Shown here: piece after piece, positions 14,266 to 58,531 of the stretch
Position numbering within the stretch: the stretch's first letter is position 1
Layout of the letters: every line of letters starts with the position of its first letter
From: Phaeosaccion multiseriatum
Lineage: Eukaryota > Protista > Ochrophyta, other classes
Assembly: GCA_965112735.1 (NCBI GenBank)
Contig: CBCOSG010000001.1
Location: 160,090 to 224,089, forward strand
Length of the DNA: 64,000 nucleotides
Direction of reading: 5' to 3'
Translations under genes and position numbers: made by a program
Notes under the pieces: model-generated
The model's input: the letters and a program-made list of their open reading frames with translations, nothing else
Database searches by the model: none
What the model was told of the DNA's origin: nothing

Positions 14266-14631
14266 TTATTTAGTACCAGTTTTTAATTTTGTATCTTTGT
14301 TGCAAAGACAGAACTGAAACTTAAATTGTACTTGATCATCAAAAGAAGTTTGTAACCAATTTAGATAACGTAGTATTGGATAAAGCTTCATGTGTGAAAA
14401 ATATAAACAAGCCTTGTAAGTACGGCGTTCGTAAGTATTTCGAGACTTGGAATGCACATGGGAAGAGCGTAGCAAAGTCCAAGTTTTTTTTTGATAAGGG
14501 GTATTTTCTATTCTGTAGGTATGCCGTGCTGGAATTTCTTGTAAAACTAAAGCAAGAAGTCCTTTAGAATAGGTTCTAATGTTTATTTTTACGCTCGCAA
14601 GAGAAGTTGAATGGGGTGTAGCTAATTTCAT
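14266..14631 (-). CDS. rps10: Ribosomal protein S10
   Basis: TLLRSSHVHSKSRNTYE.R motif. Confidence 0.88.
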   Translation of the reverse strand: MKLATPHSTSLASVKINIRTYSKGLLALVLQEIPARHTYRIENTPYQKKTWTLLRSSHVHSKSRNTYERRTYKACLYFSHMKLYPILRYLNWLQTSFDDQVQFKFQFCLCNKDTKLKTGTK

Positions 14632-14687
14632 ATATATATTTTGGTTTTTATACTAAATCCCAGAAAATCAGGAAAGGGGATGTTGTA

Positions 14688-14765
14688 ATCAAAGGTAGAA
14701 TCTAGATTTACGACTTTTGGATCAATGAGCCTAACAAGCTGACCAAGTGTTTTAGTCCACCAGTA
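14688..14765 (-). pseudogene. Degenerate tRNA-Met(CAT)
   Basis: Homologous to 45641-45715, with T-arm and acceptor stem disrupted. Confidence 0.7.
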
Positions 14766-14792
14766 TATGAAAAAACTACGTGAATTTTAGAT

Positions 14793-15164
14793 TTTAAAAC
14801 TTCACAAATCAAAAACTACCTCCACTGCCTAAGCTTCGCGCAGTAGACTACCACTTATAATTCCATAAGGCGTACTTAAGATAACTAAGGAGGTTTGGCT
14901 ACGTCGTGTCCATAACGGTGGCAAGAAGTGGGGCGAGAGGAAAAAAGATAGAGCCGATTACACTTCTGCCTTGTACGTACTTTAGTAAAATTTTGACACT
15001 TCGAGAACAGGTTTCTTGAGTATAACCCCGCAAAAATCCGTAGGTTGCCACAGTACGTCTAGGACTCGAAGACCGGCTTTAGTGGGTACGCAAACAACGC
15101 TAGATTTTTTATTTCGATAAGATTGATCTAAAATCTGTAGCATGGGTTGAATTCCTGCTTTCAT
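14793..15164 (-). CDS. rps8: Ribosomal protein S8, multiply frameshifted as sequenced
   Basis: Pieces in different frames: LDVLW, GFLRGY..ILLKY, ILSTPYGII, ARSLGSGG. Confidence 0.75.
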
Positions 15165-33348: not shown

Positions 33349-33436
33349 GGGAAAGTAAGCAAAAAGAAAAGAGAATACCTCCCGAGTCAAAATAGAGAAA
33401 ATTTATACGTCCTATGGGCACTAAAAAAAAATTTAT
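33349..33436 (+). repeat. Leader plus first codons shared between ORF176 and nad11 (40905-40992)
   Basis: GGGAAAGTAAGCAAAAAG..GAATACCTCCC.AGTCAAAATAGAGAAAATTTATAC.TCCTATG..CACTAAAAAAA occurs at both loci. Confidence 0.9.
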
Positions 33437-33944
33437 TAGACCCTTCTTTAAGAATAGAAGCTTCTTAGAAAAGGTGGACCTATTCCTTTTTGCTTATTTC
33501 ACTTGTATTCTATTTACGATGGCAGTATTATCATCCCTTCTTGAAGTGGGATCCTTACTAAACTTTTTAAAGGGAAAGAAAAGTTTTCCCTCGCCGATAA
33601 TCGGGGGAGTTACCGGTCTTATCGTGCTTTGCGCTATAGGACTCTTCTTTTTTGACCACAGGGTCAAACAAGATTCCGGGGTAACAGTAAACTTTGGAAA
33701 GTTTCAGGGATTAAGCCCCCTTTCCAAAGTAACATTTTCCCTCTTTTGGTTCACACACTATATTTTAGTGTACTTATTTGGAGAGGTTTGCGCCTATTAT
33801 GGATGCAAGCAATTTTCTCATGTCTACCACCTCATACCAATCTCGGAGATGTACCCCTATGAACCCTATCTTGGGGCTTTGGGTATCTTGGGATTGTTGG
33901 CTGTATGCTTCTACATTGACCCTCCACGGGAGAGGAAAGAGTAA
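33414..33944 (+). CDS. Orphan membrane protein ORF176
   Basis: Intact ATG ORF with a conserved paralog, ORF190. Confidence 0.8.
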   Translation: MGTKKKFIRPFFKNRSFLEKVDLFLFAYFTCILFTMAVLSSLLEVGSLLNFLKGKKSFPSPIIGGVTGLIVLCAIGLFFFDHRVKQDSGVTVNFGKFQGLSPLSKVTFSLFWFTHYILVYLFGEVCAYYGCKQFSHVYHLIPISEMYPYEPYLGALGILGLLAVCFYIDPPRERKE

Positions 33945-35291: not shown

Positions 35292-37334
35292 GTGTGTAGG
35301 TTTTTTTCTGTCTTTTTGTCATTGTTGCATGGGTATTTTTGGATTTCAGTTCTCGTCTTTCCTTTGGTGACAACCCAGTTTTTGCTTTTGAACAAAGAAA
35401 AAAAAGTTTTGGCGGGAAACTAAAACAAAAGTTCTGAGAAAAGTCTTTGATCTAAAAAATTAAAGAAAGTTTTGGTTGTCCGTTGATAATAAAAAAAATG
35501 AATACCACAAAAAAAATCTATTCTAGAATTCCCTTGTCTGGGTGGCTAAAACGCTTTAAATATAAGACAAAACATATCGATTAGAAAGATTCTTCCCACT
35601 ACAAGCACAAAGGCAGATATTTGGCTTCAGAAGGCTTGTCCACAGCCAAGAAGAAAATTCTATTTAAGCTTTCTATATAAAATCAAAAGATGAATTAAAA
35701 TGTCTTTGTCAGTTTCGTCGATTTACAGGCTAAATTTAAGGAGAAAAGACAGGAGAGCTTTTGATCAACAAACTGTTCCCATAGAAACCAAAAGTCGACT
35801 TCGATGCAAAATAGACACCGAAAGTACAAAAGCTTCAAAACTTTAATTCTTTACTAAAAAACCTAATTTTTTGATCTACACGATCCTAAAAAAAAATAAA
35901 AACTATGTTTGTTAGTCTTGCCAAAGTTTAAGTATATTGGTGTACTTCTTGATTCCTACTGACCTATTGTATTATCACCCAGAAGCCTAATGCAAGGATA
36001 GGAAGGACTTATTTGATCAAAATGCCTCACTTATTAAGTTTTAGCATTAATCTACTCTAACTCAAGTTTTGACCCCTTATTTAAGCTTTTTACAGCCCTT
36101 AAAACCGTCACTCAAATGCGGATAAATAAAGCTTTACCAATAGACAAGCTAAAGTTCTTTTAAGTTTTCATCAAATACAGGAAAATAAACAAAGTATTTC
36201 ATCAACACAGTTTAGAACTATTTGGTCTGTTCTTTTTTTGTAAGCTCAAGTCTTTTCTTAGTTAGTCAGCTTCTGGCCGAAGCTTAGCTTAATTTAACCC
36301 CTAAAGATACTTGAGAAATAATAATTTTCCCTAAATTAGTAGAATAAGATTGCCTGCAAGACTTAGACCACACCATAGAATCAAGTCAGACTTGGAGTGA
36401 AGTCTAGTTAAGAAAGAGGGGACTCTTAAGATAGCAGACTTGGTCGAAATTGAGATAAATAGAAGTGTGGAAGACCAAAGATTGAGAAAGAAAACTATGT
36501 CTTTCGTCAATTAGAAACCGATTGTTTAAAAAATCCTTTGCAGTGTTTGATTTTCATTGAGCCTTAACCCCATTTTACGCCTAGAGACTAAATATTTTTT
36601 AAAAGGCACCGAAGAGAAGGTTAGATTGACAGTGAAACATTTAGTGGACGGAAGGTTTATTCTCTGGACCAAAGATATAAGAGAACCTTTTCTATCGGTT
36701 CCATAAAATAAAGTTTATTAGTTCTAAAAGTATAAAGCACTTTACTTCATCTCAAATGGAGGCTATAATGTTGGTTATTAGGCAGCTGAGACTTTGGTAA
36801 CTAGACTCAGCATCCCAATCATGCGCTAGTTAAAGTATAAAATTTCCTTGATTTGGTTATGATCTCTTAGTTAAATATGAGGAAAAATTGCTCTTTCCGT
36901 CTAATAGAAATGAGTTAACAAACTCATTGATGGACATCTTTAATCAATCTTTTCTTTTTGATTAAGTTTTTAGGGAACAGACCCGAACAAAAAAGAGGAA
37001 AAAAAGAGGTACACTTAAAAAAGCCAAAAGTCTGCTCTCGTAATTAAACCAATCCTTTGTACTGAACCAAAACTCTGTAAGTGCTCGAAAAAACCTGTTC
37101 CTTACATTAGATTGTGTTTTCTCATATGAGAGGGCTACCAAATGCGAGTCCCATCTTTAGCACGAAACCCCAACCCTGTAGGATCTGGAGTGTAATTTGC
37201 AAATGGGCCCTACATACTGGCTGGTCCGGGAACCGGGGAAATTTATTTATCCACAAGAATCTAAATCATAAAATTAAAATAAAGCTTTATAGACCACATC
37301 CCCCTTGTTTATTTCTTGGAAATAAAAAAGATCA

Positions 37335-38643
37335 AAGACTTGAGTTTGATCCTGGCTCAGGATGAAGGCTAGGAGTATGCCTAACACATGCGAGTGTTGC
37401 CTTCTCTTAGAAGAAGAAAGCGCGAACGGGTGAGTAATACTTGGAAATCTGCCCTTTCTGAAGAAAGTAAGTAGGGAGTCTTCCCCACTTTTGCCTAATT
37501 TAGACAAAAAAGAAAGGAAGAATCCTCGAAGGATTAAGGAAGTAGGAAGGATGACAGCCTTCCTATTCAAAGATCCTTAGTTGGTCTGTGAGGTCGACCA
37601 GCCACATTGGAACTGAGACAAGGTCCAAGCCCCTGTAAGGGGCCAGCAGTGAGGAATCTTGGACAATGAGCGGAAGCTTGATCCAGCAATATTCCAAGGG
37701 GGAAGAAGGCTAAACTGGTTGTAAACCCCTCTCCCGTGGAAAGATTCAGACGCCATTCACAGGGGTAGTCCCGGCCAATTCTCGTGCCAGCAGTCGCGGT
37801 AATACGAGGGGGCAAGCCTTATCCAGAATGATTGGGCATAAAGGGTTCGTAGAGGGCATTTTCCTAGATCGTAAGATAAATTCTACCCCCCAAGGGTATG
37901 ACTTTTGACAAAACCGGGATGCTAGAGTCGAAGAGAAGATAACAGAATCACTTATTTAGGGATAAAATCCGTAGACATAAGTGGGAATACCAGAGGCGAA
38001 GGCGGTTATCTAGATTCGCACTGACCTTCAGGGACTAAAGTGTGGGGAGCAAACAGGACTTGACCCCCTGGTAGTCCACACCCTAAAATATCAGCCTAGC
38101 TGTTTAGACTGAGAAGTTTAAGCATCTTCCCTGCTAAGGCTAAGGCTGCGCCTGAGAAGTACAGCATTCAGATCTGAAATTCAAAGGAATTGGCGGGGGC
38201 TTATACAAGTGGTGGAGCATGTGGTTTAATGCGATGCTACGCGCCAAACCTTACCAGTTCTGGAATACTTCTTTCCCTTTTCGGCCTCGGAGATAAGACC
38301 AAAGACAGGAAGTACAGGTATTGCATGGCTGTCGTCAGTCCGTGTCTTAGGATGTTAAGTTCACTCTTATAACGGACGCAACCCTCTTGTGGCAGATAAA
38401 GCTCTTACCAAAGTTTTAATTGGTGAGTCCAACTTTGTCCATACTCCACATACTGCTTAGACTACGGTTTAAGAGGAAGGCGAGGATGAAGACAAGTCCT
38501 TATGGTCCTTATGAACTGGGCTACACACGTGCTACAATGGAAAGGACAATGAGTAGGAAAGATAAAATCAGTCTTTGCCAAACTTGAACACTTTCTTTGG
38601 TTCAGACTGAGGCCTGCAACTCGGCTTCACGAAGGCGGAATCA

Positions 38644-38676
<33 letters not shown>

Positions 38677-38845
38677 CTGTACCTAGGCTCTGTACAAACC
38701 GCCCGTCACATGTTGGAAGCCGGGCTTGCTCGAAGAATGTCAATGAAATGCTTTGTCTATTCTCTTGGATTTGAAAGTAGGCTTGGTAACTGAGATGAAG
38801 TCGTAACAAGGTAGTCGTAGAGGAATCTGCGGCTGAATTCAAAGA
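37335..38845 (+). rRNA. rns: Small subunit rRNA (ends approximate)
   Basis: GAGTTTGATCCTGGCTCAG, GTGCCAGCAGTCGCGGTAA and AAGTCGTAACAAGGT motifs. Confidence 0.96.
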
Positions 38846-39086
38846 AATAAGGTCTTGAACCTCAGGCGGTATAGAATTTAAGAATGAAAGTTTTCTTTAT
38901 AAAGGTGAAACATAAGCTTCTGGAACCTATGTCAGTCTTAAAACACAATATAGGGTTTTGGTATTTTTTAGGCATCAGCATCACTGAGATTTTGAAGCTC
39001 TTGGTGAGTATGCTTATTTTTTTTTGGTTTTGTGTACTAATGAACTTCTTTAATTTGATAAAAAATTAAACTAATGAGCTCTCTAC

Positions 39087-39929
39087 TTGTACTTGCAGTT
39101 TTTAGTCAATTCTCCTGCAAAATCTTGGTTTAAAATTTTAAGCCCTGCTTTCATTTTGACTTTAGGAATTCAAACTCTTTTACTGCCGCTACCGTATATG
39201 TACCCAAATTCGGCCTCGTTCATTTTTAAAGCGAGTCTTTGTGTGGTTTGGGTGTTTCAATATCAAAAATGGTCGATGATACTAAAATTTGAAAATGCCA
39301 AAACTCGGTCTAAAGAGGGCCTTTATGTAGTCTCTCTTTACGCGGACAGTCTTACCCATCCAATCTTTGGCAAACTTCAGACATATCTGTATTGGTCTTT
39401 TGTATTGGGGATTCTTCTGCCGCGGCAGTATTCAAATATGGCCTACTTTGTAGGTGTAATTTTCGTATTAATGTCCATTTACTTCTTGCCAGGATATCTG
39501 CGGGCAACGCGGCGGCTTTTTAATGAATGTTTTTTGGACCCCCGTGTACTCTATGAGAGAGGGTTCACGAAAAAGAGGTTAGTGTGGGAGCTAACTGTGG
39601 AACACTTAAAGAGGGCCGGAATTTTCATTATAGGGGGCCTACTTGTCGACGTGGGGATCGGAAAGTACCTTTATGGCCCAGACGGGAGGTCGTCGATGCA
39701 AAACTTATTTTCTTCGACGTTTGCTAACTTCACTGCGGACACTCACGAAAGTGTCACAAAATTCCGATTCCTCGAGAGAAGAGGAGTCCCCTCAGAGCTA
39801 TTGAAGACGGCGTCCGGGAAAGTAGATGTAGGGGCAGTAAATTGGTTCCTTCAGGACTATAATACCGTTCTTGATTATGTAGGAGAAGAGTATAGAGCCC
39901 AACTAGAGGATACAATCGAAAAACCTTAA
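39087..39929 (+). CDS. Orphan membrane protein ORF280 (TTG start uncertain)
   Basis: Long ORF with a strongly conserved paralog at 44604-45462. Confidence 0.8.
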   Translation: MYLQFLVNSPAKSWFKILSPAFILTLGIQTLLLPLPYMYPNSASFIFKASLCVVWVFQYQKWSMILKFENAKTRSKEGLYVVSLYADSLTHPIFGKLQTYLYWSFVLGILLPRQYSNMAYFVGVIFVLMSIYFLPGYLRATRRLFNECFLDPRVLYERGFTKKRLVWELTVEHLKRAGIFIIGGLLVDVGIGKYLYGPDGRSSMQNLFSSTFANFTADTHESVTKFRFLERRGVPSELLKTASGKVDVGAVNWFLQDYNTVLDYVGEEYRAQLEDTIEKP

Positions 39930-40002
39930 TGGGTAGATTACAATACTAGAAAAGTAGAATAATCCTAAGTAAATTATCTTGTGTTCTACGCTATTAAGCT
40001 AT

Positions 40003-40280
40003 AGAATTATAAGTGAGTCTACTGCGCGAAGCTTAGGCAGTGGAGGTAGTTTGATTTGTGAAGTTTTTTAAATCTAAGATTCACGTAGTTTTTTCATATA
40101 CTGGTGGACTAAAGCACTTGGCCAGCTTGTTAGGCTCATGATCTAAAAGTCGTAGGTATAAGTTCTACCTTTGCCCGCAATATCCTGTTTCCTGACTTTC
40201 TGGGATTTAAGATGAAGACCAAAAAATATATATTAAATTAGCTACACCCCACTCCACTTCTCTTGTGAGGGAAAAAATAA
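40003..40280 (+). pseudogene. Degenerate rps8 3' end, trnM and rps10 5' end
   Basis: Aligns with the reverse complement of about 14585-14868 and with 45540-45715. Confidence 0.85.
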
Positions 40281-40365
40281 GGAAAAAAGAAGCAAACAGT
40301 AATTTATAGAACCTAGATTTGTTTCAGAGGAGCAAATACGGACTTCGTGATATTTAGGAAGAACC

Positions 40366-40518
40366 ATGCCACAATTTGATCAAATCACCTTTTTTACTCA
40401 AATTCTTAATTTGGGTTTGTGTTTTTTTGGATTTTATTTTTTCTTTGTTTTCTACTACCTGCCCAGTCTTAGTGCCTCTTTAAAATTACGCAAGATTTTT
40501 AAGGATCTTCCCCGTTAA
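40366..40518 (+). CDS. atp8: ATP synthase subunit 8
   Basis: MPQFDQITFFTQILNLGLCFFGFYFFFVFYYLPSLSASLKLRKIFKDLPR*. Confidence 0.9.
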   Translation: MPQFDQITFFTQILNLGLCFFGFYFFFVFYYLPSLSASLKLRKIFKDLPR

Positions 40519-40541
40519 GTATCTGATGTTCGAAGCCCAGT

Positions 40542-40615
40542 CGGGAAATGGCGCAGCTTGGTAGCGCATCTGTTTTGGGAACAGAAGGTCATGTGTTCAA
40601 ATCACATTTTCCCGA
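40542..40615 (+). tRNA. trnP: tRNA-Pro(TGG)
   Basis: Cloverleaf. Confidence 0.92.
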
Positions 40616-40714
40616 ATACTTAGGTATTTGCCTACGAACTTCAGGAGCCTAATAGAAAACCTCAAGGTATCTCTTGCATCACATATTTTGGTAATTTTAG
40701 TGAATGCGATGGGA

Positions 40715-40785
40715 GACCGGATAGCATAAGGGCAATGCCTTGGATTGCAAATCCAATTATGGGAATTCGACTTTCCCTCCGGTCT
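40715..40785 (+). tRNA. trnC: tRNA-Cys(GCA)
   Basis: Cloverleaf. Confidence 0.85.
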
Positions 40786-40807
40786 AATACTTGTAAAAAA
40801 GTAGAAA

Positions 40808-40902
40808 CCAAGATCGTACTGATATTTGTATGAAATTATACCATAGGTATTTATAACCTAATATGGAAGCCATTCGTCTGAATCAGGTAGGGGTAAAAAA
40901 CC
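40808..40902 (+). pseudogene. Degenerate copy of the nad9 5' end
   Basis: Matches 46950-47044; CAA changed to TAA stop. Confidence 0.85.
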
Positions 40903-40968
40903 TTGGGAAAGTAAGCAAAAAGAGAAAGAATACCTCCCAAGTCAAAATAGAGAAAATTTATACTTCCT

Positions 40969-41865
40969 ATGACCACTAAAAAAATATTTATCAACCATCA
41001 GCTTGTTTTTGTTGAAGAATTTTCCTCAGTATTACAAGCATGTAGTAGTTTAGGCATAGAACTTCCTCGATTTTGTTATCATCCCTTATTAAATATCGCG
41101 GGAAATTGTCGTTCCTGTCTAGTAGAAGTTAGCCAAGGTCCAAAACCTCAGATGAGTTGTGCCTTCCCTATTTTAGGAGGCGGACGATTTTTTCTTCATA
41201 GTCCTTTGGTACGAAAAGCCCGAGAAACAGTTTTAGAGTTCAATCTAGTAAACCACCCTCTAGATTGCCCTATTTGTGACCAAGGAGGGGAATGCGATCT
41301 CCAAAATCAAAGCTTTCACTTCGGCAGTGACAAAACACGGTACGCTGAAGTAAAGCGTACGGTCAAAGAGACTTTTCTAGGTCTAGGTATAAAAAGTTTG
41401 ATGACTCGTTGCATACATTGCACTCGCTGTGTGCGGTATTCTAAGGAATGGTTGGGAGACAGTAATTTGACTGCCAATGGCAGAGGCTCTCACATGATAG
41501 TCGAAGCTTACTCCTCAACTCCCTTAACCACTTTAGCCTCAGGCAACGTAATAGATCTATGCCCCGTAGGGGCAGGTCTAAAAAAGGTGGTTAAAATTCT
41601 TGGGGAGAGTTGGGATTTTGTCGTCCGCTTGTGGCGAGACCTTCCTTTGGTATTGGCTTATCTTTCACTTATAATCTTATACACCTGCATTGGACTCCTC
41701 GGAGTCCGCCATATGTATGTGTATCTTGGCTGGGTCTATGCTACTTTTTTAGTAGTGTGGGGACTGTCACTTTACAAACTATGGCGGTGGGAGCCGTATA
41801 AAATAATAGGACCATATTTGGTCCTTGTTTTGTACGTCACTTTTAAGATTTGGGTTTCCTCTTAG
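40969..41865 (+). CDS. nad11: Nad11 N-terminal Fe-S domain fused to a ~96-aa hydrophobic tail
   Basis: PRFCYH, GNCR.CLVE, HPLDCPICDQGGECDLQ, RCIHCTRCVR and DLCPVGA motifs. Confidence 0.93.
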   Translation: MTTKKIFINHQLVFVEEFSSVLQACSSLGIELPRFCYHPLLNIAGNCRSCLVEVSQGPKPQMSCAFPILGGGRFFLHSPLVRKARETVLEFNLVNHPLDCPICDQGGECDLQNQSFHFGSDKTRYAEVKRTVKETFLGLGIKSLMTRCIHCTRCVRYSKEWLGDSNLTANGRGSHMIVEAYSSTPLTTLASGNVIDLCPVGAGLKKVVKILGESWDFVVRLWRDLPLVLAYLSLIILYTCIGLLGVRHMYVYLGWVYATFLVVWGLSLYKLWRWEPYKIIGPYLVLVLYVTFKIWVSS

Positions 41866-41924
41866 GAGCTGACAAGATTTTTCTTCCATTTGTGAAGTTT
41901 GTGACAAGCTTCAAGCAAAATAAA

Positions 41925-43595
41925 GAAAATCTTCACAAAGGGCATGGAGGGAATGCCTAGGGGCCCAGCCTCTGTAGACGTAGACAACAACGAAAGCTCG
42001 GAGGAAGGTCTTCGACCTGTGCACTTCGACCTTCTACCTTGGAAAACCATTCCGTTTGAGGAAAAACAGGCCAGTAAAGCCTGCAAAGAAGAGGGCAGAC
42101 AAACTGAAACATCTAAGTAATCTGCTTAAGAGAAATCAACCGAGATACCGTAAGTAGCGGTGAGCGAAAACGGTGTAGGCTCTCTCCTAGACGACCTTGA
42201 AAGATCCAAATTAAAAAACGACTCCAGCTCAATAAAACATTGGATGGAGAAGAAAACCATAGAAGGTACAAGTCCCGTAGGGGAAGAAAAGGAGAGGATT
42301 CAAGTACTTTTCTGGCGATAGACAAGGAATATTGGGGAGCCATCCTCAAAGCCTAAATAGACTGGGCCACCCATAGTGAACAAGTATCGTGAGAGAAAGG
42401 TGAAACAGAGATTTCTGCTGTGAAATGTCCTGAAACTCCCTGCCTTTTAGGTGTTGAAGCTTTGTGGAAGTGACAGCCTACCTTTTGTATAATGGGTCAG
42501 TGAGTAAAAGATTAGGGGCAAGCTTAAGTTTAGGAAGGCAAAGGTCAATCGAGGAGTAAAACTTCGTGGAGTCCCAATTTTTTTACCCGAAACCGACTGA
42601 GCTAAGATTGAACAGGTTGAAAAAGACAAGGCAACTTTCTTTGGAGGACCGAACCCGTGTATGTGGCAAAATACTGGGATGATTTGATCTTAGGGGTGAA
42701 AGGCCAATCAAAGTCGGAGATAGCTGGTTTTCTGCGAAATCTATTGAAGTAGAGCGTCTTAATGGGAAATCCGGGGTAGAGCACTGTCGTAGGAAAGGGG
42801 AGGCAAAATCTTACTGACTTATGGCAAACTGCGAATACAGGATACGTCTTCAATCAAGGCAGACAGACCATGGGTGCGAAGGTCCTTGGTCAAAAGGGAA
42901 ACAGCCCAGATTGATGGTTAAGGTCCCCAAAGGAAAGGAAGTGAAGAAGGAGGTGACGAGCTAAAGACAGCCAGGAGGTAGGCTTGGTAGCAGTCATCCT
43001 TTAAAGAATGCGTAACAGCTCACTGGTCGAAGTTTTTGCGCCCACAATGTTTGGGACTAATCTTTCCTACCGAAGCCTCAAACCCTACAGGGTGGTAGCA
43101 GAACCTTCCGTAGGTCGAGGAAGATGAGGGGCAACCTTCATTGGAGATATCGGAATCGAGAATACTGACATGAGTAGCAACAAACCAGGAGGATCCTGGT
43201 GGCCTTAAATTCAAGGGTTTCCACGACAGATTTCTTCTTCGTGGGGGCTTGAGCTAATCTCAAGCCATAAAGACGGTCCCTAAGACTGCTGACGAAAGCC
43301 AGGGTTGATGGGAGATCTTAGACAGGACGAAGCTGGCAGAGGAAGTAGAGGAGTATAGCTGGTCTCCTCTGCTTTAGCTCAGCTTCCAGGAAATACTTCT
43401 AGGAGCGGCACCGTATCGTAAACCGACACAGGTGAATGGGTGGAGTACACTCAGGCCTTTTGAGAGAACCGTGTTGAAGGAACTCGGCAAAATGACTCCG
43501 TGGCTTCGGTAGAAGGAGGAAGCCTTTGTAGGCTTGGCACTAAAGTGGGAGCGGCGACTGTTTAGTAAAAACACAGGACTCTGCGAAGTTGTAAA

Positions 43596-43633
<38 letters not shown>

Positions 43634-43719
43634 CGGAAGACCCGAAAGTGGAAGCTTTTAGGGAGAATGCCCAGTAAACGGCGGCTGTAACTCTGACGGT
43701 CCTAAGGTAGCAAAACTGA

Positions 43720-43750
<31 letters not shown>

Positions 43751-43826
43751 TGTAACGACTGCTCCGCTGTCTCCAACACGGACTCAGTGAAATTCCCATG
43801 GTCGTGAAGAGGCGACCTCGCTGCAG

Positions 43827-43860
<34 letters not shown>

Positions 43861-44165
43861 TTTGAGCTGGGAAGCATGACATAGGTTGCGTAGTAGTAGG
43901 TGGGAGGTTATGCCGCAGATGAAAGACCACCCTCCTTCAGTCTAGCTTTCTTCACCTGACTTGGGACAGGCTCAGACGGGTAGTTTGGCTGGGACGGCAG
44001 CCTCCTAAAGAGTAACGGGGGTACGCAAAGGTACACCCTTCCATGAAGGAAGAAAAGGCGGAATGGCTTGATGTGTGCCTGACTGTAAGACTCACAAGTC
44101 GAACAGAGACGAAAGTCGGCCATACAGATCCGGTGGATGTGCATATGGGCACTTCACCGCTCATA

Positions 44166-44201
<36 letters not shown>

Positions 44202-44600
44202 TCTCGAGAGCTCCTATCGACGGAAGGGTTTGGCACCTCGATGTCGACTCATCACATCCTGGAGGAGAAAAAGCTTCCAAGGGTTGGGCTGTTCGCCCAT
44301 GAAAGTGGTACGTGAGTTGGGTTTAGAACGTCGTGAGACAGTTTGGTCCCTATCTACTGTGGACAACAATCTAAGGGAAGAAATTCTAGTACGAGAGGAC
44401 CGAATTTCGGGGATCCATGGTGTACCGGTTGTGTGAGCACATGCAGTGTCGGGTAGCTACATCTCTAGAAGAGAATGGCTGAAAGCATCTAAGCCAGAAA
44501 CTTGTCCTCAAGCATTGTCTAGGCCTCGTTTTAGACGAAAACGTGAATAGGAGGGTAGTGAAAGTCGTGTAAGCGGTGTAGCTGATCCTTACTAATTAGG
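41925..44600 (+). rRNA. rnl: Large subunit rRNA (ends approximate)
   Basis: GAAACATCTAAGTA, GGTCCTAAGGTAGC and peptidyl-transferase GGCACCTCGATGTCG / AGAACGTCGTGAGACAG; no intron seen. Confidence 0.96.
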
Positions 44601-44603
44601 CTT

Positions 44604-45462
44604 ATGATGTTTAAATACATGCTGCGTCGTATGTGGAAACGAATAACAGATTTGGATACAGAGGTTTGGTTTGTAATACTGTTTGTAGCCTACTTTTTAA
44701 CCTTTGTCATTTCCTCCCTTGGACTGTTTGAGGGTAGGTTTGATATCGTGTGTTCACTAGTGCAATTCAGCGTCCATCTGGGGTGGATTTTTTACTACCA
44801 TAAAGAGGTAATTTTACCCAAGTTTAGAAAGGATAAAACCCGGTGTAGAGAGGGCAGTTATGTCGCATCTCTTTACCAGGATAGTCTGGGACACGAAGGT
44901 TTGGCAAAAGTACAAACTCTCTTGTATTCGTCATTTATCCTCGGAATCGGTCTACCACCAAAATACTCTATTTTGTTTTATCTCATAGGTTTACTCTCCT
45001 TATTGGCCTGTCTCTATTTACTGCCGGCGTATGTGCGATCAACCACACGACTGTTTCAGGAGTGTTTTTTGAATCCTGGAGTACTCCACGCTAAAGGGTT
45101 TACAAAAAAAAGAATAGTGTGGGAAGTGGCTGTAGAACACGGCAAAAGAATTCAAATAATTGTAGCGGGGGGCTAGTGGCAGATGTGTGGGTCGGAAAGT
45201 TCTTTTACGGTCTAGATGGAAGGTCGTCGCTGCAAAATTTCTATTCTTCGACGTTCGATAACTTCACTGCGGACACTCAAGAGAGTGTCACGAAATTCGG
45301 GCCCTCGAAAGCAGGAGAGTCCCCTCAGACCTGATGAAGACGGCGTCGGGGAAACTGGATATAGGAGCAATAGATTGGCTTCTTCAAGAGTATAACGCGG
45401 CTCTTGATCATTACGGAGAACTATATAAGGCTCAACTTGAAGATCGAGTCGAAAAACCTTAA
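44604..45462 (+). CDS. Orphan membrane protein ORF286 (two 1-nt frameshifts, probably errors)
   Basis: Paralog of ORF280 through to the C-terminal QLED..EKP*; the mirror arm repairs the second shift (TTCCGGGCC). Confidence 0.8.
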
Positions 45463-45539
45463 TAGTGTAGAGATAGGTAAGTTGCTAAAGGGGTATAATA
45501 CCCCTAAGTAAATTATTTTGTCTTCTATGCTATTAAGCT

Positions 45540-45610
45540 ATGGAATTATAAGTGAGTCTACTGCGCGAAGCTTAGGCAGTGGAGGTAGTTTGATTGGTAA
45601 AGTTTTTTAG
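45540..45610 (+). pseudogene. rps8 3' fragment
   Basis: Translates to YGIISESTARSLGSGGSLIGKVF*. Confidence 0.75.
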
Positions 45611-45640
45611 ACCTAGGACTCACATAGTCTTTTCATACCA

Positions 45641-45715
45641 TGGTGGAGTAGAGCAGTTGGCCAGCTTGTTAGGCTCATGATCTAAAAGTCGTAGGTTCGA
45701 ATCCTACCTCCGCCC
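45641..45715 (+). tRNA. trnM: tRNA-Met(CAT), initiator-like
   Basis: GGAGTAGAGCAG..GGCTCAT..GTAGGTTCGAATCCTAC. Confidence 0.88.
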
Positions 45716-46043
45716 GTATGCATGAACGAATAAATCCCCAGTCTAACGAGGAAATCCTCGGTTTAAAGTCTTACATCTGCTACATTAGTCCCAGGTCCGG
45801 ATCTGGGCCATCTACCTATATTCCCATTATAGCCAATATTGGCCATATAGGCCGATACTAGCTAAAATAAAGAGGATAGATAAATGGGTTTCTCTTGCAA
45901 GCTTCCGCCGAAGATACCTCTTTCGAGGAAGGGGTTAGAAGGCGGAAAAGGGTGATGCCAACCCCCAAGGAAGCCGTGGCATTCAGTAAGCAACCTTGGC
46001 ATTTAAGCATCAGTCTGATCCATTGGTGCTTAGAAAGGTTCCT

Positions 46044-46110
46044 GGATTTGTATGGATAGGCCGTCAGATTTCTGTCCCGGCGGTGGTAAGTTCAAATCTT
46101 ACCAAATCCA
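46044..46110 (+). pseudogene. D-arm-deleted tRNA-Arg-like sequence (TCT)
   Basis: Paralog of trnR(TCG) 35128-35201 lacking GCTCAAT; acceptor and T stems intact. Confidence 0.7.
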
Positions 46111-46111
46111 A

Positions 46112-46479
46112 ATTTGCGGCTTACATCAGCTTGTTCGTTATCCCCGTATACCTCAGTCCTCTCGTAGCAAATCTCCCGCTTTAAAGTCTTGCCCTCAAAA
46201 AAAGGGCCTTTGTTTAAAAATTTACTTACGAAAACCCAAAAGCCTAACTCTGCCCTACGAAAGTTATGCCGAGTACGCCTAAGTACAGGCCGTCGAATCA
46301 GCGCCTACATTCCTGGCGAGGGCCACAACCTTCAGGAATTTAATTCTGTTTTGATTCGAGGAGGTCGAGCTAAAGATCTTCCTGGTGTCCGTTACCACGT
46401 CATTCGGGGCAAGTATGACTGTTTGGGTTTAATAAAGCGTACCACTTCTCGGTCCAAATATGGGGCCAGAAAACCATAA
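46112..46479 (+). CDS. rps12: Ribosomal protein S12 (start uncertain; 1-nt deletion near 46240)
   Basis: LHQLVR..SPAL..CPQKKG, PNSALRK and PGEGHNLQE; the mirror arm has an intact PKKPNS. Confidence 0.95.
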
Positions 46480-46482
46480 AAA

Positions 46483-46919
46483 ATGAGATTGAGCCAAAGT
46501 TCTGAAGGAAGTATTTTTTGTAAGCATCTCATTCGCCGCGGGGGTCGACTTCGAGAGCTCACAGCCTCGTAGGTAGCAGTCTGCGCTACCTCTACGAGCA
46601 TCAACCGAAAAAGGCGGCTTATGTGTTTTTTCATGCTCTTCAACAGACTGAACCTATGGCTCAGGGAAAAACTTTTCCTGGCCGAAGAAAAAAGCAAGCC
46701 AAAGTACGATGGATTTCTTTCCCTCTCTGGAAAAAACGTCGTCAATACCTTAGTCTCCACTGGATTCTTCGTACGACTCCGAAGGGTCCACTATCTAAAA
46801 ATCTAGGTTCTTCCTTGTGTAAAGCCAGTCAGTCGACTGGCGAAGCCACTTTTCTAAAGCAGGCTTATCATCAACAAAGTTTAGAAGGTCGGCCTTATGC
46901 CAACTATCGCTGGCACTAA
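46483..46919 (+). CDS. rps7: Ribosomal protein S7 (2-nt insertion near 46552)
   Basis: Follows rps12; ends H.....RPYANYRW; the mirror arm lacks the extra GA. Confidence 0.85.
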
Positions 46920-46971
46920 AAACTGAATCGGCTTTTGTGTATTAGAGGGCCAAGATCGTACTGATATTTGT

Positions 46972-47499
46972 ATGAAATTGTACCATAGGTATTTACAACC
47001 TAATATGGAAATTATTCCTCTGAGCCAGGTGCGGGTAAAAAACCAGGAGGTGTGCGCTTATCTGCCTTTTCCTCCTCAGTGTTTTTCAACTTTGGTTTAT
47101 CTAAAGTATCATACAAACACTGGGTATAAAATTTTATCTTGTATCTCCGGAGTGGATTACCCTTGCCGACAAAGTCGGTTGGAAGTGGTCTACGAAGTAT
47201 TAAGTATCAAGTATAACCAACGCCTCCGTTTGCGAACTCTGTTTCAACCTAAAACCTTTAGATTTTTAGGTCTAGATTCAGTAACTAATATTTATATGGG
47301 CGCCAATTGGTGGGAAAGAGAAGTTTGGGATATGTTTGGTATCCTTTTTGAAAATCACCCCAGTTTACGGCGAATCTTAACGGATTACGGCTTTCAAGGC
47401 CATCCTTTACGAAAAGATTTCCCATTGACAGGCTACGAAGAACTTAGGTACGACGATAGTGTGAAGAGAGTGGTAGGTAATCTTATCCAAAATTTATAG
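46972..47499 (+). CDS. nad9: NADH dehydrogenase subunit 9
   Basis: WWEREVWDMFG and RRILTDYGF.GHPLRKDFPL motifs. Confidence 0.97.
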   Translation: MKLYHRYLQPNMEIIPLSQVRVKNQEVCAYLPFPPQCFSTLVYLKYHTNTGYKILSCISGVDYPCRQSRLEVVYEVLSIKYNQRLRLRTLFQPKTFRFLGLDSVTNIYMGANWWEREVWDMFGILFENHPSLRRILTDYGFQGHPLRKDFPLTGYEELRYDDSVKRVVGNLIQNL

Positions 47500-47566
47500 A
47501 GGGAAAATATATTGGTTGTTGTGGACATTAGTGGGCCTGTATCATAAAGTTAAGCCAAACTTTGGT

Positions 47567-47637
47567 TGGAGTATAGCCAAGTGGAAAGGCAGCCGTTTTT
47601 GGCGCGGCCATCCAAGGTTCAAATCCTTGTACTCCAT
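47567..47637 (+). tRNA. trnQ: tRNA-Gln(TTG)
   Basis: Cloverleaf. Confidence 0.9.
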
Positions 47638-47651
47638 AAAAGAATGCACAA

Positions 47652-47720
47652 TTGAATACTATAGAGTCAATGCCTTGGATTGCAAATTCTATCAGGAGGA
47701 TTTTATTTGGTTTCCAGCCT
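47652..47720 (+). pseudogene. Degenerate tRNA-Cys
   Basis: CAATGCCTTGGATTGCAAAT is identical to trnC; the other arms are broken. Confidence 0.6.
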
Positions 47721-47735
47721 AGTTAGTAGATAAAT

Positions 47736-47807
47736 GCAGAAGTAACTCAAAGGTAGAGTGCAAGCTTGCCAAGTTTGAAGCTGAGGGTTCAAATCCCTTC
47801 TTTTGCT
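47736..47807 (+). tRNA. trnG: tRNA-Gly(GCC)
   Basis: Cloverleaf. Confidence 0.9.
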
Positions 47808-47880
47808 GGGTCCATAGCTCAGTTGGAAGAGCATTGGCCTTCTAAGCCAAACGTCATAGGTTCGAGTCCTATTGGACCCT
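47808..47880 (+). tRNA. trnR: tRNA-Arg(TCT)
   Basis: Cloverleaf. Confidence 0.92.
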
Positions 47881-48109
47881 GATCAGCCACTCCCGGAGGT
47901 TTGTCTTCATCATAGGCTGACAAGCCTTTTCTAAATAGGGAAAACTAACTCCAATAAAATTAGTTGGATTATTTTCCTCCTTGATCTCAGTATTTCTAAT
48001 TATCATTCTACTTATGTGTACAGGGGCTCAAATTTATATTCTTCTTATAGAGTTGAAGATTGAAGAGATATTTTAGAAAGACCCAGCTGAATGTATTGTA
48101 TCAAATCTT

Positions 48110-48625
48110 ATGCGCAAAAGACGACTTTATATATCCGACAAAGTTTGTTGTGTTATTGAAAACCAAATTTTACGAATCGAAGGACCTTTGGGGGAAAAAT
48201 CCTTAGTTCTTCCTCGTGGTTTAGGCCTCCGTTGGAGTCAAGGCCGTTTAGATTATCTACCAAATTGGCGACTGCGAAAACTAGAAGCTAGTTTCTACGA
48301 CGTTTTAAAAAAAACCATCCAAGGAGTGCATCAAGGTTTTGTCTTACATTTAGATATTTTAGGTGTGGGATATAAAGCGGAGGTCCAAGATAAGGATTTA
48401 CGCCTAAAATTGGGCAAAAGCAAAATAGATGTCATGGATTTAGGCTATGGTATTGATGTTAAATGCCTAAAACCTCGACATATGTTTTTGCAAGCCGCAG
48501 AAGGAAATTTTCTCCGTCAAACTGCTGCTAATATCCGTAGTCTTCACCCTCCGGAAGTTTATAAGCAAAAGGGCATTTTTTATCGAGGAGAAAAATCTGT
48601 GACCAAACAAGGGAAAGTAAATTAA
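48110..48625 (+). CDS. rpl6: Ribosomal protein L6
   Basis: IEGPLG, GVGYKA, L.LG and PPEVYK.KGI motifs. Confidence 0.95.
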   Translation: MRKRRLYISDKVCCVIENQILRIEGPLGEKSLVLPRGLGLRWSQGRLDYLPNWRLRKLEASFYDVLKKTIQGVHQGFVLHLDILGVGYKAEVQDKDLRLKLGKSKIDVMDLGYGIDVKCLKPRHMFLQAAEGNFLRQTAANIRSLHPPEVYKQKGIFYRGEKSVTKQGKVN

Positions 48626-48660
48626 AGAATTACGCCTCTACATATGCTAAAGAAAAAAGA

Positions 48661-48716
48661 TAGGGGGTCAAGATTTAGTAAAGTACGGTACTACTACTAA
48701 AAGCCTAGACCCCCTA
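48661..48716. other. Imperfect fold-back apex; putative hairpin telomere
   Basis: TAGGGGGTC-aaga-TTTAGTA-a-AGTAC-g-GTACT-ac-TACTAAA-agccta-GACCCCCTA, at the centre of a palindrome of about 30 kb. Confidence 0.75.
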
Positions 48717-48751
48717 TCTTTTTTCTTTAGCATATGTAGAGGCGTAATTCT

Positions 48752-49286
48752 TTAATTTACTTTTCCTTTGTTTGGTCACACAGATTTTTCCCCTCGATAA
48801 AAAATGCCCTTTTGCTTATAAACTTCCGGAGGGTGAAGACTACGGATATTAGCAGCAGTTTGACGGAGAGAAAATTTCCTTCTGCGGCTTGCAAAACATA
48901 TGTCGAGGTTTTAGGCATTTAACATCAATACCATAGCCCTAAATCCATGACATCTATTTTTGCTTTTGCCCAATTTTAGGCGTAAATCCTTATCTTGGAC
49001 CTCCGCTTTATATCCCACCACACCTAAAATATCTAAATGTAAGACAAAACCCTTGATGCACTCCTTGGATGGTTTTTTTAAAACGTCGTAGAAACTAGCT
49101 TCTAGTTTTCGCAGTCGCCAATTTGGTAGATAATCTAAACGGCCGGCCTTGACTCCAACGGAGGCCTAAACCACGAGGAGGAAGAACTAAGGATTTTTCC
49201 CCCAAAGGTCCTTCGATTCGTAAAATTTGGGTTTTCAATAACACAACAAACTTTGTCGGATATATAAAGTCGTCTTTTGCGCGCAT
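48752..49286 (-). CDS. rpl6: rpl6, mirror copy (frameshifted by indels)
   Basis: Reverse complement of 48110-48625. Confidence 0.8.
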
Positions 49287-49518
49287 AAGATTTGATACAA
49301 TACATTCAGCTGGGTCTTTCTAAAAATATCTCTTCAATCTTCAACTCTATAAGAAGAATATAAATTTGAGCCCCTGTACACATAAGTAGAATGATAATTA
49401 GAAATACTGAGATCAAGGAGGAAAATAATCCCAACTAATTTTATTGGAGTTAGTTTTCCCTATTTAGAAAAGGCTTGTCAGCCTATGATGAAGACAAACC
49501 TCCGGGAGTGGCTGATCA

Positions 49519-49853
49519 GGGTCCAATAGGACTCGAACCTATGACGTTTGGCTTAGAAGGCCCAATGCTCTTCCAACTGAGCTATGGACCCACCCAGCAA
49601 AAGAAAAGAAGGGATTTGAACCCTCAGCTTCAAACTTGGCAAGCTTGCACTCTACCTCTACCTTTGAGTTACTTCTGCATTTATCTACTAACTAGGCTGG
49701 AAACCCAAATAAAATCCTCCTGATAGAATTTGCAATCCAAGGCATTGACTCTATAGTATTCAATTGTGCATTCTTCTTTTATGGAGTACAAAGGATTTGA
49801 ACCTTGGATGGCCGCGCCAAAAACGGCTGCCTTTCCACTTGGCTATACTCCAA
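49519..49853 (-). tRNA. Mirror copies of trnR(TCT), trnG(GCC) and trnQ(TTG), with indels
   Basis: Reverse complement of 47567-47880. Confidence 0.8.
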
Positions 49854-49926
49854 CCAAAGTTTGGCTTAACTTAACTTTATGATACAGGCCCCCACTAATG
49901 TCCACAACAACCAATATATTTTCCCT

Positions 49927-50465
49927 CTATAAATTTTGGATAAGATTACCTACCACTCTCTTCACACTATCGTCGTACCTAAGTTCTTCGTAGCCTGTCA
50001 ATGGGGAAATCTTTTCGTAAAAGGATGGCCTTGAAAGCCGTAAATCCGTTTAGAGATTCGCCGTAAACTGGGGTGATTTTCAAAAAGGATACCAAACATA
50101 TCCCAAACTTCTCTTTCCCACCAATTGGCGCCCATATAAATATTAGTTACTGAATCTAGACCTAAAAATCTAAAGGTTTTAGGTTGAAACAGAGTTCGCA
50201 AACGGAGGCGTTGGTTATACTTGATACTTAATACTTCGTAGACCACTTCCAACCGACTTTGTCGGCAAGGGTAATCCACTCCGGAGATACAAGATAAAAT
50301 TTTATACCCAGTGTTTGTATGATACTTTAGATAAACCAAAGTTGAAAAAACACTGAGGAGGAAAAGGCAGATAAGCGCACACCTCCTGGTTTTTTACCCG
50401 CCCGCACCTGGCTCAGAGGAATAATTTCCATATTTAGGTTGTAAATACCTATGGTACAATTTCAT
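49927..50465 (-). CDS. nad9: nad9, mirror copy (frameshifted)
   Basis: Reverse complement of 46972-47499. Confidence 0.85.
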
Positions 50466-50517
50466 ACAAATATCAGTACGATCTTGGCCCTCTAATACAC
50501 AAAAGCCGATTCAGTTT

Positions 50518-50986
50518 TTAGTGCCAGCGATAGTTTGGCATAAGGCCGACCTTCTAAAACTTTGTTGATGATAAGCCTGCTTTTAGAAAAGTGGCTTCGC
50601 CAGTCGACTGACTGGCTTTACACAAGGAAGAACCTAGATTTTTAGATAGTGGACCCTTCGGAGTCGTACGAAGAATCCAGTGGAGACTAAGGTACGTTTT
50701 TTCCAGAGAGGGAAAGAAACGACGTTTTTGGCTCCAGAGAGGGAAAGAAATCCATCGTACTTTGGCTTGCTTTTTTCTTCGGCCAGGAAAAGTTTTCCCT
50801 GAGCCATAGGTTCAGTCTGTTGAAGAGCATGAAAAAACACATAAGCCGCGCCTTTTTCGGTTGATGCTCGTAGAGGTAGCGCAGACTGCTACCTACGAGG
50901 CTGTGAGCTCGAAGTCGACCCCCGCCCCCGCGGCGAATGAGATGCTTACAAAAAATACTTCCTTCAGAACTTTGGCTCAATCTCAT
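50518..50986 (-). CDS. rps7: rps7, mirror copy (frameshifted)
   Basis: Reverse complement of 46483-46919. Confidence 0.75.
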
Positions 50987-50989
50987 TTT

Positions 50990-51393
50990 TTATGGTTTTC
51001 TGGCCCCCCATATTTGGACCGAGAAGTGGTACGCTTTATTAAACCCCCAAACAGTCATACTTGCCCCGAATGACGTGGTAACGGACACCAGGAGGAAGAT
51101 CTTTAGCTCGACCTCCTCGAATCAAAACAGAATTAAATTCCTGAAGGTTGTCCTGAAGGTTGTGGCCCTCGCCAGGAATGTAGGCGCTGATCGACGGCGA
51201 CGGCCTGTACTTAGGCGTACTACTCGGCATAACTTTTTCGTAGGTAGGGCAGAGAGTTAGGCTTTTTGGGTTTTCGTAAGTAAATTTTTAAACAAAGGCC
51301 CTTTTTTTGAGGGCAAGACTTTAAAGCGGGAGATTTGCTACGAGAGGACTGAGGTATACGGGGATAACGAACAAGCTGATGTAAGCCCGCAAA
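50990..51393 (-). CDS. rps12: rps12, mirror copy (frameshifted)
   Basis: Reverse complement of 46112-46479. Confidence 0.85.
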
Positions 51394-52055: not shown

Positions 52056-52962
52056 TTAAGGTTTTTCGACTCGATCTTCAAGTTGAGCCTTATTATATAG
52101 TTCTCCGTAATGATCAAGAGCCGCGCGTTATACTCTTGAAGAAGCCAATCTATATTGCTCCTATATCCAGTTTCCCCCCGACGCCGTCTTCATCAGGTCT
52201 GAGGGGGGGACTCTCCTGCTTTCGAGGGCCCGGAATTTCGTGACACTCTCTTGAGTGTCCGCAGTGAAGTTATCGAACGTCGAAGAATAGAAAATTTTGC
52301 AGCGACGACCTTCCATCTAGACCGTAAAAGAACTTTCCGACCCACACATCTGCCACTAGCCCCCCGCTACAATTATTTGAATTCTTTTGCCGTGTTCTAC
52401 AGCCACTTCCCACACTATTCTTTTTTTGTAAACCCTTTAGCGTGGAGTACTCCAGGATTCAAAAAACACTCCTGAAACAGTCGTGTGGTTGATCGCACAT
52501 ATACGGCCGGCAGTAAATAGAATAGAGACAGGGCCAATAAGGAGAGTAAAACCTATGAGATAAAACAAAATAGAGTATTTTGGTGGTAGACCGATTCCGA
52601 GGATAAATGACGAATAATACAAGAGAGTTTGTACTTTTGCCAAACCTTCGTGTCCCAGACTATCCTGGTAAGAGAGATGCGACATAACTGCCCTCTCTAC
52701 ACCGGGTTTTTATCCTTTCTAAACTTGGGTAAAATTACCCTCTTTATGGTAGTAAAAAATCCACCCCAGATGGACGCTGAATTGCACTAGTGAACACACG
52801 ATATCAAACCTACCCTCAAACAGTCCAAGGGAGGAAATGACAAAGGTTAAAAAGTAGGCTACAAACAGTATTACAAACCAAACCTCTGTATCCAAATCTG
52901 TTATTCGTTCCACATACGACGCAGCATGTATTTAAACGACGCAGCATGTATTTAAACATCAT
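52056..52962 (-). CDS. ORF286, mirror copy (frameshifted)
   Basis: Reverse complement of 44604-45462. Confidence 0.7.
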
Positions 52963-52964
52963 AA

Positions 52965-57688: not shown

Positions 57689-58531
57689 TTAAGGTTTTTC
57701 GATTGTATCCTCTAGTTGGGCTCTATACTCTTCTCCTACATAATCAAGAACGGTATTATAGTCCTGAAGGAACCAATTTACTGCCCCTACATCTACTTTC
57801 CCGGACGCCGTCTTCAATAGCTCTGAGGGGACTCCTCTTCTCTCGAGGAATCGGAATTTTGTGACACTTTCGTGAGTGTCCGCAGTGAAGTTAGCAAACG
57901 TCGAAGAAAATAAGTTTTGCATCGACGACCTCCCGTCTGGGCCATAAAGGTACTTTCCGATCCCCACGTCGACAAGTAGGCCCCCTATAATGAAAATTCC
58001 GGCCCTCTTTAAGTGTTCCACAGTTAGCTCCCACACTAACCTCTTTTTCGTGAACCCTCTCTCATAGAGTACACGGGGGTCCAAAAAACATTCATTAAAA
58101 AGCCGCCGCGTTGCCCGCAGATATCCTGGCAAGAAGTAAATGGACATTAATACGAAAATTACACCTACAAAGTAGGCCATATTTGAATACTGCCGCGGCA
58201 GAAGAATCCCCAATACAAAAGACCAATACAGATATGTCTGAAGTTTGCCAAAGATTGGATGGGTAAGACTGTCCGCGTAAAGAGAGACTACATAAAGGCC
58301 CTCTTTAGACCGAGTTTTGGCATTTTCAAATTTTAGTATCATCGACCATTTTTGATATTGAAACACCCAAACCACACAAAGACTCGCTTTAAAAATGAAC
58401 GAGGCCGAATTTGGGTACATATACGGTAGCGGCAGTAAAAGAGTTTGAATTCCTAAAGTCAAAATGAAAGCAGGGCTTAAAATTTTAAACCAAGATTTTG
58501 CAGGAGAATTGACTAAAAACTGCAAGTACAA
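57689..58531 (-). CDS. ORF280, repeat copy
   Basis: Identical protein. Confidence 0.8.
   Translation of the reverse strand: MYLQFLVNSPAKSWFKILSPAFILTLGIQTLLLPLPYMYPNSASFIFKASLCVVWVFQYQKWSMILKFENAKTRSKEGLYVVSLYADSLTHPIFGKLQTYLYWSFVLGILLPRQYSNMAYFVGVIFVLMSIYFLPGYLRATRRLFNECFLDPRVLYERGFTKKRLVWELTVEHLKRAGIFIIGGLLVDVGIGKYLYGPDGRSSMQNLFSSTFANFTADTHESVTKFRFLERRGVPSELLKTASGKVDVGAVNWFLQDYNTVLDYVGEEYRAQLEDTIEKP

Follow-up and report, generated by a model that had tools for sequence, protein, structure and literature searches.

The stretch of DNA analysed here (hereafter the window; 64,000 nt from Phaeosaccion multiseriatum, contig CBCOSG010000001.1) is mitochondrial and carries a pair of related open reading frames (ORFs), ORF280 and ORF286, located behind the ribosomal RNA (rRNA) genes rns and rnl, respectively (Table 1). 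It represents the final 64 kb of a contig of 224,089 nt (C17) in a eukaryotic assembly of 67 Mb and 22 contigs. The genes rns and rnl, a permuted-type 5S rRNA and 36 transfer RNA (tRNA) genes were identified in the window with Rfam and ARAGORN, and the usual respiratory and ribosomal protein genes were present (Pfam). C17 consists of approximately four copies of a mitochondrial unit of ~56.2 kb (56,194 nt), each with a single-copy part of ~25 kb and, joined head to head near window position 48690, two inverted-repeat arms of ~15.5 kb apiece. The ORF280/ORF286 pair is present in both arms (A and B), and the eight assembled copies of each inverted-repeat locus on C17 were compared.

ORF280 begins 238 nt 3′ of rns and was open and 100% identical in seven of the eight contig copies. 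Behind rnl, the region homologous to it opens with ATG-ATG at 44604, sharing its first 10 nt with the end of the Rfam match to rnl, and ends with a stop at 45460-45462. A sequence-only reading made before the present analysis had described two paralogous ORFs, the second starting within a few bases of the rnl 3′ end; the paralogy and the position of this start were both upheld, whereas ORF286 as an open frame was not, with the region divided between three frames in arm A. Comparison of the two by tblastn gave an E-value of 7e-71, with 53% amino-acid identity over 278 aligned codons, and all of the conserved blocks listed in the earlier reading were recovered in this alignment. A joined ORF286 of 286 codons was built for the alignment and for the calculation of dN/dS only; the search tools were given its pieces separately.

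Identity at codon positions 1, 2 and 3 was 66, 76 and 49%, respectively, the second position being the most conserved and the third the least. The proportion of differences at replacement sites (pN) was 0.28 compared to 0.65 at synonymous sites (pS), and NG86 estimates of dN (0.35) and dS (1.48) gave an omega (dN/dS) of ~0.24 (Fisher P = 4e-19). This value is not near 1 and agrees with the earlier suggestion that conservation at the protein level implies selection. The C-terminal third alone gave a dN of 0.17, a dS of 0.63 and an omega of ~0.28 (P = 7e-6). Because free drift of one of the two copies for long would hardly leave a pairwise omega near 0.25, both appear to have been constrained over a long period, and purifying selection probably acted on both for most of their history. 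For both ORFs the annotated frame was the best of the three by the codon usage of this genome. That neither ORF is functional, both being decaying duplicates with a similarity that comes from recent copying only, is strongly disfavoured and has very little probability. Such duplicates could be expected to look as these do in some respects, ORF286 being frame-broken and ORF280 lacking an ATG start, with atypical codon usage and no homologues found; however, saturation over the first two thirds of the alignment affects synonymous but not replacement sites, the pattern across codon positions is that of translated sequence, and a frame of 280 codons stayed open throughout the divergence.

ORF286 is homologous to ORF280 along its entire length, yet it is not one open frame in the window. 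The arm A copy needs two frame corrections and the arm B copy many. One of the two in arm A, a shift near 45295 (1-nt gap), is private to the window copy, and another copy (locus L011) has a 7-nt indel at the same spot. Three standard genes (nad5, nad7 and rps12) are also frame-broken in the window copy and intact in the majority consensus of four or eight C17 copies, indicating that most frame breaks in the window are copy-specific noise. The majority ORF286 sequence, to which three copies are identical, keeps exactly one break, at a G6 run with a TAG directly after it. This run is G6 in six copies and G5 in two, and the frame is restored in none of the eight. One added base at the run produces the continuous 286-codon frame from which ORF286 takes its name. 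At the corresponding site ORF280 reads G5 and then CC, so the base lost from ORF286 could be a G or a C. Past the break, 98 codons remain open and conserved in the majority sequence. An alternative genetic code that reads through the TAG was rejected, as the onward frame is unrelated sequence with more stops. The assembly holds no nuclear copy (nuclear mitochondrial DNA segment, NUMT) that could arbitrate the frameshift, with no copy found outside C17.

We regard it as highly improbable that ORF286 is expressed despite this break, whether by ribosomal −1 slippage on the heptamer G GGG GGC or through a G run whose length is changed by polymerase slippage or is heteroplasmic, with full-length protein coming from a fraction of the messages. 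Expression of this kind would suit a break that is found in every copy, directly before a stop and at a heptamer that fits X XXY YYZ, a run length that varies from 5 to 6 among copies, and a downstream region that is still open and conserved. A missed base or a recent one-base deletion is, however, the simpler account of the same data, and G-only heptamers are in general poor slippery sites. We know of no established programmed −1 shifting of the G-heptamer kind in algal mitochondria.

The homology between the two loci extends past the ORFs. At the DNA level, ~39120-40177 on the rns side corresponds to ~44650-45716 on the rnl side, comprising the ORF, a spacer and a tRNA. The tRNA gene after ORF286, a trnM(cat), looks functional and the one after ORF280 is degenerate, with the cloverleaf largely retained, the acceptor and T arms damaged, and mismatches in the acceptor stem. 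A ~50-nt core of the spacer is identical in both ORF-linked copies, and a 32-nt probe taken from this core matched a third copy with one mismatch. This third copy of the spacer and tRNA-like part has no ORF280-like gene upstream and runs into the start of rps10; past the tRNA it shares ~100 nt, including the first rps10 codons, with the ORF280 locus and not with the ORF286 locus. Hence the ORF280 locus is mosaic: on its left it is like the ORF286 locus, and on its right it is like the rps10 locus. In all, a dispersed repeat of ~220-285 nt (the spacer together with either trnM(cat) or its degenerate form) occurs at three loci per genome unit and may act as a recombination hotspot or as an RNA processing signal. 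The idea that the conserved spacer forms a stable RNA structure was rejected, since 39930-40180 folded no more stably than shuffled sequences (z −0.38).

Synonymous divergence between the two ORFs was uneven. It was saturated at codons 1-182 (pS 0.63-0.87) and fell to 0.29-0.41 at codons 183-280, with the step at approximately codon 183 coinciding with the G run. As constraint on the protein should leave synonymous divergence unaffected and yet this divergence declines from 5′ to 3′, a later gene conversion probably spread upstream from the spacer-tRNA repeat.

The protein is predicted to have an N-terminal membrane part. A Kyte-Doolittle scan of ORF280 found three strong hydrophobic segments (residues 15-33, 118-136 and 177-195), and two weaker ones (~43-60 and ~97-113) were read by eye from the sequence; the four to five transmembrane segments given previously are therefore plausible and not firm. 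The best-conserved regions are two basic loops (61-96 and 138-176, the latter with 10 K/R compared to 5 D/E) and an acidic tail of 85 residues (196-280; 9 K/R compared to 13 D/E) that is predicted to be helical. With five membrane helices, the positive-inside rule would place the N-terminus on the matrix side and both basic loops in the matrix, and the acidic tail, like that of Cox2, would be exported into the intermembrane space.

No relative of either ORF was found. A word-index protein search with ORF280 returned no homologue, and a HMMER profile of ORF280 and two ORF286 pieces had no match at E ≤ 0.001 among 1.84 billion cluster representatives. Pfam searches (E ≤ 1) with ORF280 and the N-terminal part of ORF286 gave chance-level rows only (TGT_C1, 0.072; DUF3611, 0.56), NCBIfam gave no match at E ≤ 1, PHROGs gave rows at E 0.09-0.2 only, and PDB sequences, searched with a profile to E ≤ 10, yielded no match. 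In the ESM Atlas there was no usable match for ORF280, and the C-terminal piece led to unnamed “hypothetical” clusters below the range of reliable recognition. Metagenome contigs searched with back-translated peptides yielded nothing, targeted hmmsearch runs on two related mitogenomes that are partial, L034 and L035, detected no member, and a six-frame translation of the whole unit (hmmsearch --max) contained only the family itself, with the next match at E 0.45. A literature search for this mitogenome and for orf280 and orf286 found nothing relevant. The best cox3 relatives of this genome are stramenopiles, brown algae and Schizocladia among them, and the top match is only 69% identical, so no mitogenome of a close relative is present in the libraries. 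With the nearest cox3 at 69% and the two paralogues at only 53% identity, orthologues in the nearest relatives with sequence would probably be undetectable, and the orphan status of the pair is thus weak evidence of novelty.

These searches also bear on whether the pair is a standard mitochondrial gene. The earlier reading had recognised none, and this was sustained as far as the searches reached, with blank results from Pfam, NCBIfam, PHROGs and PDB sequences. TatC was rejected as an identity, as a six-frame search with PF00902 found nothing on C17 at E ≤ 1 and as the architecture does not match: TatC has six transmembrane segments and no hydrophilic acidic tail of the kind that follows the three to five hydrophobic segments of ORF280. 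Nor was there support for ATP synthase subunit b (atp4/ymf39) or for any further standard membrane subunit, with no Pfam or NCBIfam family and no PDB chain matching. A highly diverged standard gene, tatC or else an atp4, sdh or ccm membrane subunit, is an improbable identity for the pair. It would explain why the TatC model is blank on the mitochondrial contig and why no unassigned ORF with six transmembrane segments lies elsewhere in the unit, and ~280 residues is a size within range. In addition to the blank profile searches and the unlike architecture, however, it would be odd for a standard single-copy gene to be present as two copies at 53% identity. Mitochondrial tatC is common in stramenopiles, and it is the one standard gene that was not located on C17. 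By profile search it seems to be absent from, or unrecognisable on, C17, and the TatC profile matches in the assembly are confined to contigs C18 and C19. We take these two to be plastid contigs, and the host is for this reason taken as a plastid-bearing alga.

A second pair of orphan membrane proteins is encoded in the window. ORF176 (33414-33944, plus strand, in the inverted repeat; also 7480-8010, minus strand) and ORF190 (10550-11122, minus strand, single-copy) share 57% identity as proteins and 83% across the first 300 nt of their DNA, have no Pfam match, and display a GC content at third codon positions (GC3) of 0.42-0.455 and a lower codon-usage score, as ORF280 and ORF286 do. Homology between the two pairs was not detected by hhalign (probability 0.2%, E 0.27), and a link via a shared D-S...G-K-x-Q motif was rejected, the hhalign match covering only 18 columns around this motif.

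Both pairs together could be foreign or selfish, the remnants of a mitochondrial plasmid or of horizontally acquired DNA that serve the element and not the cell, and that persist and duplicate through recombination. We consider this unlikely. The GC3 of all four orphan ORFs exceeds that of every standard gene (0.28-0.41), no relatives were found in the searches, and the loci are recombination mosaics beside a dispersed repeat, all of which would be expected of such an element. No plasmid hallmark (DNA or RNA polymerase) was found, however, and there was no PHROGs or Pfam match, PADLOC not having been searched. An omega of ~0.24 maintained over a long divergence indicates that function was kept at the protein level, and neither a toxin-antitoxin-like partner nor mobile-element ends were seen, the neighbours being rRNA genes, tRNAs, atp8 and rps12. 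The earlier proposal of a cytoplasmic male sterility (CMS) or toxin type finds no support for these same reasons. The CMS ORFs of plants are of recent origin and free of long-term constraint, and they often carry fragments of standard genes. They resemble ORF280 and ORF286 in being membrane proteins and in having mosaic loci beside repeats; ORF280 and ORF286, too, would probably be co-transcribed with essential genes. In contrast to them, the present ORFs are old and constrained (omega ~0.24 at saturated dS), and no stretch of another mitochondrial gene was detected in them. Moreover, the host is a unicellular alga, in which male sterility has no meaning.

We consider it probable that ORF280 and ORF286 are diverged copies of a real, lineage-restricted and mitochondrion-encoded gene for a multi-pass inner-membrane protein that was duplicated as a cassette. 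The cassette would have comprised the ORF, the spacer and trnM(cat), and recombination or gene conversion at the dispersed spacer-tRNA repeat would have made the copies and partly re-homogenised them. Both ORFs are probably transcribed with their neighbours in the same-strand cluster at 33.4-48.6 kb, in which all mapped genes lie on the plus strand, and their mRNAs would be released by cleavage at the tRNA, or tRNA-like structure, that follows each ORF. Co-transcription would thus not be special to these ORFs, and their position behind the rRNA genes, previously taken to suggest high expression, does not carry that implication. ORF280 would be the working copy. ORF286 would have been under selection for most of its history and either is intact in the cell, a base having been missed at the G run, or suffered the loss of its frame very recently. 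As to a role, our best guess is that the protein serves an inner-membrane complex in a lineage-specific way, as an accessory subunit or as an assembly factor. There is also a small chance that the pair represents an inner-membrane protein family not seen before (e.g., a subunit or assembly factor of a respiratory complex, of ATP synthase or of a membrane-bound mitoribosome), with two functionally diverged copies, the second possibly read through the break at the G run.

Several observations weigh against a real gene kept in two copies. The ORF280 frame opens only three codons before the TTG at 39087 and has no ATG until residue 38; as the alignment with the paralogue is conserved from residue 14, ORF280 likely starts at this TTG or at another non-ATG codon. 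With two sequences and no outgroup, selection is not assignable to either branch. The GC3 of ORF280 and ORF286 (0.44-0.45) is higher and their codon-usage score lower than in the standard genes, a pattern also compatible with weak expression or with a foreign origin. AlphaFold2 run on a three-row alignment returned no usable fold (mean predicted local distance difference test score 49.8, predicted template modelling score 0.34), and with no homologue, domain or usable fold to draw on, the function proposed above is a guess. The break in ORF286 occurs in all eight copies, while the A/T runs and the G6/C6 runs of standard genes stay in frame. Within those genes 27 A/T runs of 7-10 nt are in frame, indicating that long homopolymers are not generally miscalled, and the length of the G6/C6 runs within the protein genes is 6 nt in every copy. 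It is therefore not clear that a plain miscall at a homopolymer accounts for the break, and ORF286 could be truly broken; a consistent miscall and a real, very recent one-base deletion appear about equally probable.

Table 1. Features of the ORF280 and ORF286 loci and of their surroundings (window positions).
Feature	Position	Strand	Basis or remark
ORF280, intact, 280 codons	39087..39929	+	Open frame
ORF280, other inverted-repeat arm	57689..58531	-	Sequence match
ORF280, repeated as the window wraps the 56,194-nt unit	1495-2337	-	Same sequence as 57689..58531
ORF286 first frame, 190 codons, ATG-ATG to the TAG made by the frame break	44604..45176	+	Aligns with ORF280 residues 6-184, 46% identity
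ORF286 second frame	~45167..45298	+	Aligns with ORF280 residues 183-226, 73% identity
ORF286 third frame, window copy only, through the stop	~45292..45462	+	Aligns with ORF280 residues 225-280, 63% identity
G6 run, ORF286 frame break	45167..45172	+	Broken in all 8 assembled copies
ORF286, other arm, many small insertions, noisy contig end	~52056..52962	-	Sequence match
Spacer block, ORF280 locus	39954..40102	+	88% identity across 224 nt, tRNA-like part included; ~40007-40056 core identical
Spacer block, ORF286 locus	45493..45641	+	Counterpart of 39954-40102
Degenerate trnM(cat) after ORF280	40103..40176	+	Rfam tRNA 28.0 bits, gathering score 29; no ARAGORN call
Functional-looking trnM(cat) after ORF286	45642..45715	+	ARAGORN; Rfam 59.6 bits
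Stretch matching the rps10 upstream region and first codons	40178..40280	+	blastn 40000-40280 vs 14867-14583, 87%
Third spacer and tRNA-like copy, no ORF280-like gene upstream	14583..14867	-	Runs into the rps10 start
rps10 (ORF121)	14266-14631	-	Start reached by the third repeat copy
Permuted-type 5S match, just upstream of rns	37131-37242	+	RF02547 40.4 bits
rns, small-subunit rRNA	37334..38848	+	Rfam RF00177 961.6 bits
rnl, large-subunit rRNA	41926..44613	+	Rfam RF02541 1771.8 bits

The two arms are identical at ~33.4-41.6 kb and beyond this differ by small indels only, mostly in arm B towards the contig end. The part with indels (41574-56039) is the inner ~7 kb of each arm, the outer 8 kb being identical; a tandem duplication of 19-20 nt at 52.9 kb is among the arm-to-arm indels. 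Three G/C runs in rns (3533-3538, 3612-3617 and 37886-37891) vary between 5 and 6 nt among the eight contig copies, as the G run of ORF286 does, and G/C runs longer than 6 nt are nearly missing from the 224-kb contig, with one G7 in the noisy arm. Between rns and ORF280 lies an ATG-started ORF of 61 codons (38884-39069, plus strand) with two hydrophobic segments and a GC content of 0.30, which has no counterpart before ORF286. The nad11 gene (40969-41865, plus strand, compared to 56038-56649, minus strand) encodes the N-terminal Fe-S part only. In arm A and in the eight-copy consensus it continues past approximately residue 203 with a hydrophobic tail of ~95 residues, and in arm B it ends at 203 residues; the two readings part exactly where perfect identity between the arms stops (41573).

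The conserved “orf” and “ymf” genes of brown algae, diatoms and oomycetes are lineage-specific unidentified mitochondrial ORFs. Such protist and algal genes are, like ORF280 and ORF286, mitochondrion-encoded, hydrophobic, narrow in lineage and located amid standard genes on the same strand. ORF280 and ORF286 differ from them in being two copies at 53% identity, both with a signature of purifying selection, and in having no orthologue found elsewhere. The downstream tRNA or cloverleaf-like structure (28 bits) of the two loci recalls tRNA punctuation and the “t-elements” of plant mitochondria, tRNA-like structures that serve as signals for RNA processing, and a spacer and tRNA unit precedes rps10 as well. 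Unlike t-elements, however, the spacer-tRNA units are putative processing sites, and their conservation may equally reflect recent gene conversion.

Large inverted repeats bearing rRNA genes are a feature of oomycete and some yeast mitogenomes. They have also been described in Proteromonas lacertae (PMC2997541) and Palpitomonas bilix (PMC5174734). C17 resembles these mitogenomes in that two long arms each carry rns, rnl and their neighbours, with copy correction preserving the identity of the arms. It differs in that its arms meet head to head (at ~48690) and in that the duplication that gave ORF280 and ORF286 lies within each arm and is much older than the identity between the arms.

On present evidence, ORF280 and ORF286 are one more family of unidentified mitochondrial ORFs, with a history of duplication that is well resolved, and not a new mechanism. 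What they add is a constrained, duplicated and relative-free gene in an algal lineage that is distant from its nearest sequenced mitochondrial relative (cox3, 69%), and a dispersed tRNA-containing repeat that shuffles and re-homogenises genes within a mitogenome. As mitogenomes encode a small and nearly fixed set of proteins, an extra gene under selection hints at lineage-specific respiratory or translation machinery.

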